DNA of 64,000 nucleotides from Anaeramoeba ignava BMAN (GCA_028826165.1 JAPDFW010000018.1:14682-78681); one strand, 5' to 3'. Shown: positions 55,237-64,000, numbered from the stretch's first letter. Translations and numbers: made by a program. The notes: generated by a model not told the origin, from the sequence alone.

Positions 55237-58200
55237 TTAAATCAATCCTTGATAATTTTGTGGAAGTAAATCTCTTGGTGTTTTTTTACTCCATGCATAT
55301 ATAGCTTTTAAATCAAAATTAGCATTAGTTTCTTTCAATAGAAGAAGCATTTCATCTGTAATTGATGGATTTTGACAAAGATAATGTAATGGAGTCCACT
55401 ATTTTATTTTGTTTTATTTTGAAAAGATTCCAAAAAAAATTATTTAATTTACAAATTTAAATTTAATTTTCTGTTTATGATGTTTTGTTTTGTTTTGTTT
55501 TGTTTTATTTTGTTTTACTCCCTTTTTTTTATTTCCAAAAAAAAAGCATTAATTTAATTTAATTTAATTTAATTTAATTTAATTATCTTATCAAATTTGT
55601 TTTTTTTACTTTCTATTTATTAATTCATTAATTAAATTGATTTATTTTTTTGATTTTTTATTCCAAATTTTATTTATTTATTTATTTATTTATTTATTTA
55701 TTTATTTATTTATTTATTTATTTATTTATTTATTTATTTATTTATTTATTTATTTATTTATTTATTTATTTATTTATTTATTTATTTATTTATTTATTTA
55801 TTTATTTATTTATTTTAATTTATTTATTTATTGATTTATTGATTTATTGATTTATTTATTTATTTATTGATTTATTGATTTATTAATTAATTGATTGATT
55901 GATTTATTGTTTTATTAATTGATTTATTGATTTATTTATTGATTGATTTATTGATTTATTGATTTATTGATTTATTACTCCCTAATTTTTAATTTTATTT
56001 TTAATAATAATTTTGAAATTTAATAAAAAAATATTATTAAATTCAAATTATATCAAAAGATTTACAATCTTATTTAATTATTTTATAATTAAAAAAAATG
56101 AATAAAAAAAGTGGAATTTTTTTGCAAATAAATGGATTTTGATTTTTGGTTAATTAATACTTCTTGTAAATTGAAATTAGCATCATTGTGAATTAAAATT
56201 CTAATCATTTCAATTGTAATTGAAGTGTTTTGGCATAATAAATGTAATGGAGATTGCTAACAAAAAAAAATAGAAAAGAGATGATTAATTTACAAAAATT
56301 ATTTTTTTTTGGATTTGTTTTTACCCACTATTTATTTTCATTTTCCAAAATAAAAACAAAAATAAAAACAAATAAATTTTTTTGATAAAAATTGAAATTG
56401 GAAATTTTTTTTTACTTTCTATTTAACAAATTTGATTTAATAAATTATTTTTTTTGGGTTGTTAAAAAAAAAGATGAAAAAAAAAAGAATACTTTCTATT
56501 TATTTTCAAAAATATAATTTTTATTTAAATTTATTTTCAAAAATTTAATTTTTAATTATGATTTCTTTTTCATTTAATTTACATTCTAAATTTTTTAAAT
56601 TGGAAATGAATTTAATTTAGATTATTTTTCTTAAAATAAAATTTTGATTTTTTTTTTTGATTTAATTCTTTTCATTTGAATTACATTCTATTAAAATAAT
56701 TTAAATTATTATTATTATTATTATTTAAATTAATTATTAAAATTTACAAGTAACTATTTAAAATAAATGAGAATGAGAATGAGAATGAAAATGGAAATAA
56801 AATTTTTATTAATTTTGTTTTGGAAAAAGAATTACATATTGAATATTGAAATCACATCTCATATTGAATAATAATTCAATTATTTCTTCTGTAATTGATT
56901 CATTTCTACATAAATCATGTAAAGGAGTCCACTTTTTATTATTAATAATATTAATAATAAATTAATTTAAATTTGTAAATTTATTTTTTTATTTTACATT
57001 CTTTTATTTTATTTAATATTATCAAGATTAATAGAATTAAACAGAATTAAATAATTTTATTTTTTACTTCCTATTTTATTCCAATTATTTTATTTTCATT
57101 TTTTAATAATTTAATTTGATTTTATTTGATTATTATTATTACAATCTATTTTGAATATGTTTTTTTTTATCAATTTAATATAATTCACAAATCAAATAAT
57201 TTCTTAGTTTTTTTTTTGATTATCAAATATAAAATAAACAAAAATTAATTAATTTCTTTTTCTTAAAATTTACATTCTAAATCAAACCAATAAATAAATA
57301 AATAAAGATTTTTAATATTTTGTTTTTGTTTTTGTTTTTGTTTTTAAAAGGAATTACAGACTAAATAATAATAACAATAATAAATTTAAAAAAGAAAGAA
57401 AGATATTGATTGATTTATTGATTGATTTATTGATTGATTTATTTTGAAGATGAATAATTTTTTAAATAAAAATTTATTACTTTCTAAATTTGGGAATGAA
57501 AAAATACACAATAAAATTATCAAATTTTTTTATAAATTAAATTTAAATTAAATAAAAAATAATTTATGAAATTTATTAAGAATATTATTTATTTTTTATT
57601 TTTTATTTTTTATTTTTACTCCTCCCTATTTAAATATTATTTAAAAAATAATAATAAATTTCCAAATAAAAAAAAAAATAGATGAATAAAATTCCAAAAT
57701 TAATTTAATTATTTATTTACTGTCTATTTTTATTTTGAAAAACAAAATTTTTTTAAGAAATGAATTAAATTTAAATTAATTATTAAATTAATAAATAAAT
57801 TACTCCATTTAAATTAAAATCTGCTCCATTAGATATCAATAATTGAATAATTTCAAATGTAATTGATTCATTTCTACATAAATAATGAACAAGAGAATCC
57901 TTTTGAAAAAATTTAAATAATTTCAATTTCAGAAATTGATTTATTGAATATTTAGTAAATTATTTATTTATTACTTTCTAAATTGTTTATTTTTAATAAA
58001 ATGAAAAAGTAAAATTGATAAATAAATTTGAAAATTTGATTCTTTTATTTTTACATACTATTTAAAAATTAATGAAAAATAAAAACAAAATATTATTAAT
58101 AGAGAAAGAAATTTAATTTGATTTTTCATTTTATACTTTCTATTAAATTAATAAGTTAAAAAAAAATAATCAATCAATTAATCAATCATTTTTATATTTA

Positions 58201-61200: not shown

Positions 61201-64000
61201 TTTTAGATTTAGATTTAGATTTAGATTTAGATTTATATTTAGATTTAGATTTAGGATTAGATTTAGATTTAGAATTAGATTTATATTTAGATTTAGATTT
61301 AGATTTAGATTTAGAATTAGATTTGTTTTCAAAAAAAAATTACTTTCTAAAAAAAATATTAAAAATAGATATAAATAGATTTAATTGATTATTTTGTAAT
61401 TTTTGTTTTTTCTTTTTTTACATCCTTTTTTTTATAATAATAATAATAATTTATTTTTGAATTTTAATTTTAATTTTAATAAATAAATTGAAAAAAAGAT
61501 GTTTGAATAAAATTGTGTTGTTTTTTGAGAAATTGATTTAATTATTACATCCTATTTTTTAAAATTTTTTTGATTGAATGAAAAAAATAATTAATAATAA
61601 TTAATAATAATTTAATAATAATTTTGAATTTAAAATAAATAAAATAAAAACATCTTGTTTTGTTGAATCAAATCCTTTTTTGAATAAAATTTTCAAAATA
61701 CGAAAATCAATAGGTTCTCTTTTAGAAAAAAAATGGAACAAAGAATCCTAATTCCAAAAAGAAAAGAAAAGAAAAGAAATATTATTTTTTAAATTGATTG
61801 AATAAATTAGATTTTGTTTGAAAAAAAAAGAATTAAAGAAGATAATTAAAGAAATCAAACTTTTTTTCCCTAATCAAAATAATCAAAAAAATAAATAATC
61901 AAATAAAAAATAAATTAATTTTTGTTTTTGTTGTTTTTGTTTTTTTTGTTTTTTACATGTTTAGAATTTTGATATTGTTTTTTTAATAACTCTAATAACT
62001 TTTCATCTTTTTTATCTTCAATTTCTAATAAAATTATTTTAATTAAAAAAAAGGGAAATTAATAAGAAAATAAGAAAAAAAAGAATTTATTGTTTTGATT
62101 TTTTTTTTGGAAATAATAATTTACTTTTTTTTGCTTTAAATTTTTTCATCATTTCTTTGTGTTTTTTTTTTTCGTTTTTGGAAATTTGAAATTAAAAAGA
62201 AAATAAACAATTTAGGAATTTTAATTAATTTATTTTAAGTAGAAAAAAAAAGAAATACCTTTTTTTTCCATTCCTAAAGCTTCTAAAGCTTCAGTTCCTT
62301 TATCCATAATTTGTTTATCTTCATGAAAATTAAACATTGAAGAAAGAATTGCTTCAAATGCAATTTCTTTGTTAATTTCTTTTTCTTTTTCTTTTTCTTT
62401 TTCTTTTTCTTTTTCTTTTTCTTTTTTTTCAAAATAAAAATATTTTTGGAATAAATTGAAGAAAAAAAATTTTTTTTTGGAATTTGGAATTTGGAATTTG
62501 GAATTTGGAATTTTGAATTTGGAATTTTGAAAATTATTTTACTTTTTTCTTTCCCAATATTAATAAAAATTAAAAAACATTGAAATTGAAGATATGCTGT
62601 AAAAGGAAAATTAATCATTGCTTTTATAATTAAATCAAATGGATTTAAATTTTGAAAATTAAGTGGAATTTCTATTAAATTTTTGTTTTTTTTTTGTAAT
62701 AATAATAATAATAAAAATAAAAGAAAAGAAAATAAATCAATTAATAAATCAACCAATCAATCAATAAATCAATTAATTAAGAAATTTACTTTTTTCAATC
62801 TCTGTATATTTTCTTAAAGCCGAACAACAACTTTCTTGAATAAAACGATCTGAAGGGAAATTATTCATATATTCAAAAATGAAAGAAAGATCAAATTGAA
62901 TTACTTCTTTTCTTGGATCTTTTTTTTTGGATTTTGTTTTCCAAATAATAAAATTATTTCAAAAAGAATTATATTAATTTCTCTTTTTTTTTTTTTTTTT
63001 TGAATTTGAGATATCAAAAAAAAATTATTTATAAATTGATATTATTTACCTTTATCATTTTGTTGTATTGAATCCCTAAGTTTTTCAAAATAACTCATTG
63101 TTTGATTTATTGATGAAATCATTTGATTATTTTCTTTTTCATTTTGTTTATCTTCAGAAATTTGTTTTAATTCTTCATAATATGGATTTTGTGTAAATTG
63201 ATTTTGATTTTGTGGATATTGTTGAAATTGTTGAATTTCATTTTCAATTTCATTTTCAATTTCATTTTCAGATCCATTTTCAATTTCATTTTCATTTTCA
63301 TTTTCATTTTCATTTTCATTTTGATTTTCATTTTTGTTTTCAATTTCATTTTCATTTTCATTTTCATTTTCATTTTGATTTTCATTTTCAAATCCATTTT
63401 CATTTTCAATTTGATTTTGATTTTCATTTTTGTTTTCAATTTGATTTTCATTTTCAAATCCATTTTCATTTTGAAATTGATTTTGATTTTGATTTTCATT
63501 TTGAATTTGAAATTGCTTTTGTGGATATTGATTTTCAATTTGAAATTGATTTTCATTTTGGTTTAGATTTTGATTTTGAATTAGATTTTGATTTTTTAAT
63601 GGATTTTGATTTTGAAATTGATTTTGATTTTGAAATTGATTTTGATTTTGATTTTGATTTTGAATTTGAAATTGATTTTGAAATGGTGGAAATTGTTGAA
63701 ATTGAAATGAATTTTCATTTTCTATTTTTGGATCAATTATTAGAATTTATTTTAGTTTGAATAATTGTATAAAATTTTTTTTATATTATTATTATTATTA
63801 TTAGAAAAATTAAAATTAAAATTAAATATAATAAAATTACTTTCAATTTTGATTTTTTCTAAACATTGAATAAATTCATTTAATGAACATCTTTCTTTTG
63901 GATTTTGATTCCATCCTTTTTTAATCACTTCAATTCTTTTGGAAAATCATTTGGAAATTCACAATTCTTATTCATGGCACATATTTCGCTGTATCTGTGA
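55237..64000 (-). CDS. Kinase C-terminus + Q/N-rich linker + 3 ARM-like repeats + 11 ankyrin repeats, encoded by >55 exons including ~39 microexons of 3-6 nt; 5' part outside the window
   Basis: Exons ..-63841 ([20 protein letters not shown]), 63721-63050, 62918-62790, 62671-62543, ~62378-62259, 62154-62125, 62024-61957, 61869-61861; ankyrin cores 61747-61652, 61132-61037, 60547-60458, 60003-59914, 59465-59370, 59035-58940, 58480-58385, 57899-57804, 56931-56836, 56256-56161, 55398-55237 (TPLHxLCxNxSITxEIIxxLIxxGADFN); phases are consistent to TAA at 55239-55237. Confidence 0.85.

Follow-up and report, generated by a model that had tools for sequence, protein, structure and literature searches.

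The window gene and its three-nucleotide cassettes

The window, as we call the whole stretch of 64,000 nucleotides (nt) analysed here, corresponds to contig C20:14682-78681 in the 42.8-Mb, 147-contig assembly of Anaeramoeba ignava, a free-living anaerobic protist (PMC11550330), and has a G+C content of about 18%. Between positions 55237 and 61869, its minus strand carries the ankyrin part of a gene whose nearest database proteins are GenBank entries from A. ignava (KAJ5072428.1 and others). This part is composed of 11 ankyrin exons. The last one measures 159 nt; the ten internal ones, hereafter the cores, measure 96 nt (eight of them) or 90 nt (two), are all in phase 0, and each of them encodes the two-helix portion of an ankyrin repeat. 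The gaps between exons hold 37 cassettes of the form AG|NNN|GTA, in which 3 nt stand between an acceptor and a donor, and two similar cassettes of 6 nt, thus 41 codons; three cassettes lie in each of gaps 1 to 7, followed by 8, 6 and 4 in the last three gaps. The features are listed below in the order of transcription.

61652-61747, minus strand: ankyrin core exon 1, 96 nt, phase 0, with an unusual GTTTTT donor; this core is kept in both paralogs on contig C71
61344-61551, minus strand: gap 1-2, three 3-nt cassettes, D-D-K (GAT 61551-61549, GAT 61424-61422, AAA 61346-61344)
61037-61132, minus strand: ankyrin core exon 2, 96 nt, matching positions 3-31 of 33 of the Pfam Ank profile (E 9.5e-4)
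60615-60789, minus strand: gap 2-3, K-D-G (AAA 60789-60787, GAT 60694-60692, GGA 60617-60615)
60458-60547, minus strand: ankyrin core exon 3, 90 nt
60071-60212, minus strand: gap 3-4, K-N-G (AAA 60212-60210, AAT 60140-60138, GGA 60073-60071)
59914-60003, minus strand: ankyrin core exon 4, 90 nt
59542-59674, minus strand: gap 4-5, G-E-E (GGA 59674-59672, GAA 59604-59602, GAA 59544-59542)
59370-59465, minus strand: ankyrin core exon 5, 96 nt
59110-59281, minus strand: gap 5-6, K-D-K (AAA 59281-59279, GAT 59199-59197, AAA 59112-59110)
58940-59035, minus strand: ankyrin core exon 6, 96 nt
58545-58702, minus strand: gap 6-7, K-D-G (AAA 58702-58700, GAT 58624-58622, GGA 58547-58545)
58385-58480, minus strand: ankyrin core exon 7, 96 nt
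57975-58139, minus strand: gap 7-8, K-Y-K (AAA 58139-58137, TAT 58057-58055, AAA 57977-57975)
57804-57899, minus strand: ankyrin core exon 8, 96 nt
56998-57723, minus strand: gap 8-9, over-full, T-GG-K-S-N-I-E-N (ACA 57723, GGAGGA 57625-57620, AAA 57483, TCT 57360, AAT 57276, ATT 57145, GAA 57070, AAT 57000; here and in the next two gaps, 3-nt cassettes are given by their first base)
56836-56931, minus strand: ankyrin core exon 9, 96 nt
56325-56753, minus strand: gap 9-10, over-full, LL-N-N-K-K-W (TTACTT 56753-56748, AAT 56687, AAT 56585, AAA 56495, AAA 56418, TGG 56327)
56161-56256, minus strand: ankyrin core exon 10, 96 nt
55519-56068, minus strand: gap 10-11, I-G-K-G (ATT 56068, GGA 55981, AAA 55612, GGA 55521)
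55237-55398, minus strand: last exon, ankyrin repeat 11 and C-terminal tail, 53 codons (coding 55398-55240, stop TAA 55239-55237), matching the C-terminus of KAJ5072428.1 (residues 479-531)

An initial annotation of this DNA had described the cores and about 39 microexons along this segment; every coordinate that it gave holds on the minus strand, and the cassettes do number 39. Each has the flanks of a microexon (an exon of up to about 30 nt in the mature mRNA), with AG as acceptor and GT as donor in the coding orientation and intron-sized spacers on both sides. The 49 segments that separate consecutive exons all run from GT to AG, 47 of them opening with GTA, and with lengths of 57-366 nt (median 81) and a G+C content of 3-18% they look like ordinary introns. 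Their donors are nearly all strong GTAA sites and their acceptors are TAG or AAG, resembling those of the cores. The A. ignava genome is 80.65% A+T and its introns 91.86% A+T (PMC11550330), and more than 30,000 introns have been reported (bioRxiv 10.64898/2026.04.11.717937); A. pumila, according to the same preprint, retains hardly any introns, nearly all of them having been lost. Microsatellites fill introns of the gene at 61150-61330, 58205-58330 and 55680-55990 (minus strand), (AAATCT)n in two of them, while an (AAAT)n tract of about 300 nt occupies the 366-nt intron between GGA 55981 and AAA 55612.

The cassettes are specific in both spacing and strand. On the sense strand of 55237-61869, AG-N(k)-GTA occurs 37 times for k=3, six times for k=2, where it corresponds to core donors, and twice for k=6; all remaining values of k between 0 and 12, including 0, 1, 4 and 5, are absent. 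The plus strand of the same segment has no occurrence for k=3, and elsewhere in the window this spacing is not commoner than the others. The motif AGNNNGTAA is found 47 times in the window (both strands, 64 kb) against 9.15 +/- 3.15 in shuffles, and 35 of the 47 occurrences belong to the minus strand of this 6-kb gene. With approximately 0.5 cassettes expected by chance and 37 seen, the pattern is not due to chance.

The same signature extends over the genome. Tandem pairs of cassettes located 50-80 nt apart number 1145 for k=3, compared with 94 for k=4 and 107 for k=2, most of the latter two coming from a few satellites and coding repeats. These two spacings served as genome-wide controls; a reversed-pattern control is inflated by repeats coding for N and E. 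Other ankyrin genes with the same cassettes do exist: 14 of 30 ankyrin loci fetched with one core as the query carry 11 to 32 sense-strand cassettes per 3 kb. The AT-rich genome of the sister species Anaeramoeba flamelloides gave another picture, with no k=3 excess in about 44 kb around its ankyrin homologs. The closest of these homologs (GCA_027625915.1, GCA_028892595.1) have a single 3984-nt exon or ordinary introns and no 3-nt cassettes. From this comparison, the architecture may be specific to A. ignava.

Fit of the cassettes to the ankyrin fold

Being only 3 or 6 nt long, the cassettes keep the reading frame, and the absence of stops put forward in the initial annotation extends to all 41 codons. 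Stops are likewise missing from a set of 425 cassettes gathered at 13 ankyrin loci, where base or trinucleotide composition predicts 9-10%; TAT is found 28 times and TAA never. The commonest cassette codons, AAA, GAT, GGA, AAT and TAT, specify loop-type residues. Altogether, the cassettes contribute 123 of the 1230 coding nt of the ankyrin domain (about 10%), the remainder residing in exons of 90-159 nt.

Uninterrupted ankyrin open reading frames (ORFs) of the same genome provide an internal standard for the spacing of repeats. Their period is 35 amino acids (aa) in 138 of 187 intervals and never less than 33, and the stretch equivalent to the cassettes measures 3 aa in 212 of 229 repeats. Cores alone have a period of 30 or 32 aa, which becomes 35 aa upon addition of three cassettes. 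Similarly, the distance from a conserved Asn to the Thr of TPLH is 4 residues with cores alone and 7 with three cassettes, the value found in uninterrupted relatives. The spacing typical of tandem ankyrin repeats, about 33 residues with a hairpin loop joining helix 2 to the following helix 1, would be reached only if the cassettes are part of the mRNA. Exactly three residues are encoded in 40 of the 82 gaps between cores of split genes, the consensus being K-[D/Y]-[K/G].

Scanned singly, six of the ten cores match Pfam Ank or Ank_3 (E 9e-4 to 0.035) over profile positions 3-31 of 33, and the last exon (53 aa) also matches Ank_3 (E 0.012); none of these matches reaches the gathering score, which is normal for an isolated repeat. 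The Pfam Ank profile opens with D-G, ahead of x-T-P-L-H. Since the cores begin at profile position 3, this D-G lands on cassettes 2 and 3. The proposal that the cassettes supply loop residues and restore a 35-aa period thus agrees with the uninterrupted relatives and with the Pfam Ank profile. The related suggestion that cassettes coincide with the positions randomised in DARPins stands in part: the three cassettes would correspond to two variable hairpin positions and the conserved glycine.

Paralogs and the history of the cassettes

Two tandem copies of the whole unit, each comprising a RING-kinase ORF, helical-repeat exons and 11 ankyrin modules, are found at C71:533900-553100 (C71a and C71b). 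Their introns are 92-96% identical to those of the window gene and they carry the same cassette series, over-full clusters included. Between the window gene and C71b, the more distant copy, identity is 92% in intron interiors, 93% in cores and 93% in cassette codons. The AG and GTAA positions that flank the cassettes are distinctly better preserved, with 229 matches and 2 mismatches against 4123 and 360 in intron interiors (Fisher p = 2.8e-6). As measured by divergence between these copies, this difference shows that selection acts on the splice sites beside the cassettes. Nine cassette codons differ from C71b, and all nine differences change the amino acid. In C71a, the ATT cassette (57145) has lost its AG, which would make the loop one residue shorter.

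Among the three paralogs, the cores evolve at an intron-like rate (omega 0.7-1.9). This rate and a frameshift in the kinase part at the contig end, described below, are the two observations that a decaying pseudogene would explain. Nevertheless, although the copies differ by 7%, none of the three has a stop in its 11 cores; their splice sites are also conserved, and the cassettes far exceed the number expected at random. Decay of a pseudogene, or a chance pattern, is therefore extremely improbable and close to refuted; fast-evolving cores devoid of stops rather indicate a kinase-ankyrin family that is changing fast, not decaying.

More diverged paralogs, located on contigs C93, C104 and C61, have introns unrelated to those of the window gene and annotated products 36% identical to the C71b product, yet cores and cassettes are retained. 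Their three C-terminal gaps are all over-full, with 7 to 13 cassettes encoding quite different residues. On the evidence of these alignments, the cassette design is older than the window and C71 copies, and the same comparisons show that paralogs have come to differ, in the course of evolution, in both the length and the sequence of their loops.

Within the window gene, introns occupying the same position in different modules are homologous, the one after core 2 resembling the one after core 6 and the one after core 3 resembling the one after core 4, while adjacent introns display no relatedness (z below 4.5). This combination indicates that the gene grew by copying whole modules that already contained cassettes, and the lack of relatedness between neighbours indicates that the cassette chains of this gene are old. 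No intron-loss copy with a cassette fused to a core was found in the seven loci examined. An origin of the codons by target-site duplication was considered and rejected: identical neighbouring codons, with 4 of 26 pairs counted by hand against a roughly estimated proportion of about 0.13, do not exceed expectation.

Splicing of the cassettes, known systems and neighbouring genes

Considering these data together, we regard it as probable that the window carries a protein-coding gene of a fast-evolving A. ignava kinase-ankyrin family, in which chains of one-codon exons placed between the cores supply the hairpin-loop residues. That the cassettes are included as translated single-codon exons, mostly constitutively, can be held with good confidence, and inclusion of some kind is highly likely. 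The initial annotation had read the cassettes as single-codon exons, a reading on which several indirect lines of evidence converge here: their strand and spacing specificity, the absence of stops, the conservation of splice sites, the uninterrupted relatives and the Pfam Ank profile. From these genomic features we infer inclusion of the cassettes in the mRNA, their translation and the order of splicing.

In the mechanism that we propose, each AT-rich segment of 57-366 nt would be spliced out like any GT-AG intron, by intron definition. Because an exon of 3 nt is, from general knowledge of splicing, too short to accommodate both neighbouring splice complexes at once, removal of the introns would have to proceed in steps. 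With the intron before it gone, the codon would become the end of a normal-sized exon facing a normal GTAA donor. Use of a cassette acceptor would entail use of its donor, hence inclusion of exactly 3 nt, because read-through hits stops within a few codons. Conversely, cassettes that never served in splicing would be under no constraint to keep their AG and GTAA or to exclude stops. The product would have a 35-aa repeat with a hairpin of canonical length, and its last three loops would be longer, with 9, 7 and 4 added residues. Whole modules (core, cassettes and introns) were duplicated as the gene grew, and from paralog to paralog single codons and the number of cassettes differ while the splice sites are retained. 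As codons vary and splice sites persist, a single splice-site mutation could shorten a loop by one residue without causing a frameshift, an event seen once, and gain of a unit would presumably lengthen it likewise.

Several observations weigh against this interpretation. First, joining the cores directly also keeps the frame, so that the reading frame does not discriminate between inclusion and omission. Second, six of the 82 inter-core gaps in paralogs are without any cassette, which indicates that short loops are tolerated in the kinase-ankyrin family. Third, many of the 425 cassettes duplicate one another, so that the nominal probability of a stop-free set (about 1e-21) overstates the independent evidence; with only a hundred independent cassettes it would still be about 1e-5. 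Fourth, the splice-site conservation test has limited power, as the three closest paralogs are young (92-96% identity between introns). Fifth, protein collections queried with the annotated product of a paralog returned only genome-predicted relatives and none derived from a transcriptome; the last exon used as a query retrieved no short fragment from protein collections. Finally, in the GenBank models of the paralogs one 96-nt core follows another with nothing in between, giving an annotated period of 32 aa.

The last of these observations calls for a closer look at the models themselves. In places, they run through a cassette donor into the intron, which yields a filler rich in lysine and asparagine. 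KAJ5072428.1, the product of C71b, omits the first ankyrin core and all cassettes, and translates two cassette donors with the following intron as filler, e.g., G-V-K-Q-N-K-T-K; the annotated product carries PF00023, PF12796, PF13606 and PF13637. To our knowledge, Hisat2 cannot place an exon of 3 nt. The models are predictions, and the RNA-seq data behind them were mapped with Hisat2 (PMC11550330), hence they are weak evidence against inclusion. The kinase-ankyrin family is mis-annotated, and ORF finders did miss the cassettes, as had been anticipated, as does the public annotation.

Chains of cassettes also occur outside the ankyrin genes. BTB-TLDc genes at C1:1056000-1075999 and C1:940500-944500 (minus strand) contain three-nt cassettes in chains of 7 to 27, with near-identical introns of 70-85 nt between them; the chains start right after an exon that ends with G-P-x-F-G. 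Their flanking exons are in phase 1, so that codons straddle the junctions; in the true phase, the chains are rich in Asp, Tyr, Phe and Trp and lack stops, where a naive reading would give a run of Ile, Leu and Met. A direct join produces the compact junction G-P-T-F-G-N-D-I, a spacing that would be usual for the TLDc family, which makes skipping a live option in these genes. At C1:405000-414999 (minus strand), near-identical introns again separate three-nt cassettes, here in three chains of 10-12; the one chain for which the upstream exon was placed is in phase 0, and the encoded residues are hydrophilic, rich in R, N, Y, D and Q. The near-identical intron arrays on contig C1 are in tandem.

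Such arrays, with their 3-nt spacing, resemble recent tandem duplications. Together with the compact TLDc junction, the in-frame direct joins, the annotated 32-aa period and the paralog gaps that lack cassettes, they would fit a model in which the cores are joined directly and the cassettes are absent from mature mRNA, AG-NNN-GTA being either a by-product of intron multiplication (duplication of an intron plus 3 nt) or an intermediate site that is later removed. We find this model quite unlikely for the window gene. Unused sites should decay, whereas the splice positions beside the cassettes have diverged far less than the introns around them, and paralogs with introns too different to be aligned still show the design. 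Moreover, stops are absent and the choice of codons suits the loop, adjacent introns are unrelated, as expected of old chains, and use of an acceptor without its donor would lead into a stop-rich intron. An introner-like family, whose numerous near-identical members would spread irrespective of the exons around them, was likewise rejected for the window gene, in which intron similarity follows module duplication only and neighbouring introns are unrelated. Known cases of intron gain by tandem duplication or introners remain a useful parallel for other parts of the A. ignava genome, where the near-identical arrays of 70-85-nt introns, 3 nt apart, look like repeated duplications of an intron and a codon.

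Alternatively, the cassettes could be real exons used combinatorially, as in the splicing-based diversification that the initial annotation thought possible, one gene giving rise to many proteins that differ in the length or sequence of loops on the ankyrin binding face. Schistosome micro-exon genes (MEGs), whose exons are mostly 6-36 bp, vary by exon skipping. As in MEGs, whose exons measure 3-81 bp (PMC10526429), every combination would be in frame here since all cassettes are of 3 or 6 nt, and the last three gaps exceed the needs of the fold and encode the loops that vary most between paralogs. This alternative is nonetheless unlikely. The donors are nearly all strong GTAA and the acceptors TAG or AAG as in the cores; three paralogs share the order and number of cassettes, even in the over-full clusters, an observation no less compatible with constitutive use; and the modal number of three cassettes equals the fixed loop length of uninterrupted relatives, as expected of constitutive exons. 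Uniformly strong splice sites, a fixed order in paralogs and a modal count of three therefore argue for constitutive inclusion, although regulated skipping could still have a place in the C-terminal loops, which are over-full and change fast. By extension, A. ignava could tune the length and sequence of the binding loops in its expanded ankyrin and TLDc families by including or skipping 3-nt exons, thereby obtaining a repertoire of binders from one gene. This idea is speculative and would seem improbable at present; if true, a free-living protist with bacterial symbionts would possess, through splicing, an equivalent of antigen-receptor diversity.

The proposed serial one-codon exons have partial likenesses in four further known systems, of which the first two are the closest. 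First, MEGs of Schistosoma mansoni also form quickly diversifying families and contain runs of very short exons, multiples of three and down to 3 bp, that can be dropped without a frameshift (PMC10526429). In MEGs, however, microexons represent most of the coding sequence of small secreted proteins and introns reach 5 kb, whereas the exons in question in the A. ignava gene are almost all exactly 3 nt, are separated by introns of 57-366 nt and target one defined site of a folded repeat; with 123 of 1230 nt in cassettes, its coding sequence is not mostly made of microexons. Second, ultra-short plant microexons (1 nt in APC11 and VPS55, and clusters) are too short for aligners and systematically missed by annotation, and their reality was inferred, as here, from conserved splice sites and from intronless relatives that have the same letters inside one large exon (PMC8831610). 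They are singles or pairs at conserved sites of housekeeping genes. In A. ignava, by contrast, each module of a repeat protein has a chain of its own, with 3 to 13 single-codon exons in a row, and other genes have as many as 27. Third, neuronal microexons of animals (3-27 nt) are in frame, add few codons and alter surface loops, and a conserved 3-nt exon has been documented in human MAP4K5 (PMC8632122). In contrast, these exons are isolated within long introns, and they require dedicated activators such as SRRM4 (PMC7935315). Finally, recursive splicing through AG|GT ratchet sites involves a stepwise removal in which each step regenerates a usable donor. Ratchet sites leave nothing in the mRNA, whereas each step in A. 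ignava would leave 3 nt; recursive splice sites as such were rejected for this gene, in which AG directly abutting GTA occurs zero times on either strand.

We found no description of tandem 3-nt exons, or of microexons in Anaeramoeba, in the literature searched. If RNA data confirm the predicted structure, it would be the most extreme microexon architecture that we found described, with up to 8 consecutive exons of one or two codons here, up to 13 in paralogs and up to 27 in other families. The spliceosome would then routinely handle serial 3-nt exons, which bears on the recognition of exons and introns, and loop length could evolve residue by residue without frameshifts. In addition, the published proteome of A. 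ignava would be systematically wrong in its largest repeat families. Given that standard aligners and gene finders are blind to such structures, these may exist unnoticed in other AT-rich protists.

Upstream of core 1, the following features extend to the contig end. The bounds of the upstream exons were obtained by reading the sequence and by tblastn with a paralog's product.

61860-61868, minus strand: possible 9-nt exon GGAAAAAAA (G-K-K) with a GTT donor, just 5' of core 1; lower confidence; identical in all three paralogs, though the neighbouring intron is identical as well
61957-63721, minus strand: upstream exons of the same gene, bounds approximate (N/Q/E-rich exon ~63721-63050; helical-repeat exons ~62943-62776, 62669-62538 and 62376-62254; short exon near 62150; exon 62024-61957)
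63848-64000, minus strand: C-terminal part of a protein-kinase domain, truncated where the contig stops and carrying a frameshift; probably the 5' part of the same gene

At 63848-63960 (minus strand), the C-terminal lobe of the kinase matches its family through two overlapping pieces in different frames. This 1-nt frameshift, less than 150 nt from the contig end, reflects either an assembly error or a damaged kinase. KAJ5067461.1 and the two C71 copies likewise have a RING-kinase followed by ankyrin repeats.

Immediately 3' of the ankyrin gene, at 52036-55081 (minus strand), lie two tandem ORFs of 379 and 352 aa that combine a RING finger and a protein kinase. The adjacent RING-kinase ORF has no record in the protein collections searched. 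The N-terminal architecture of the two ORFs is the same as that of the kinase-ankyrin family.

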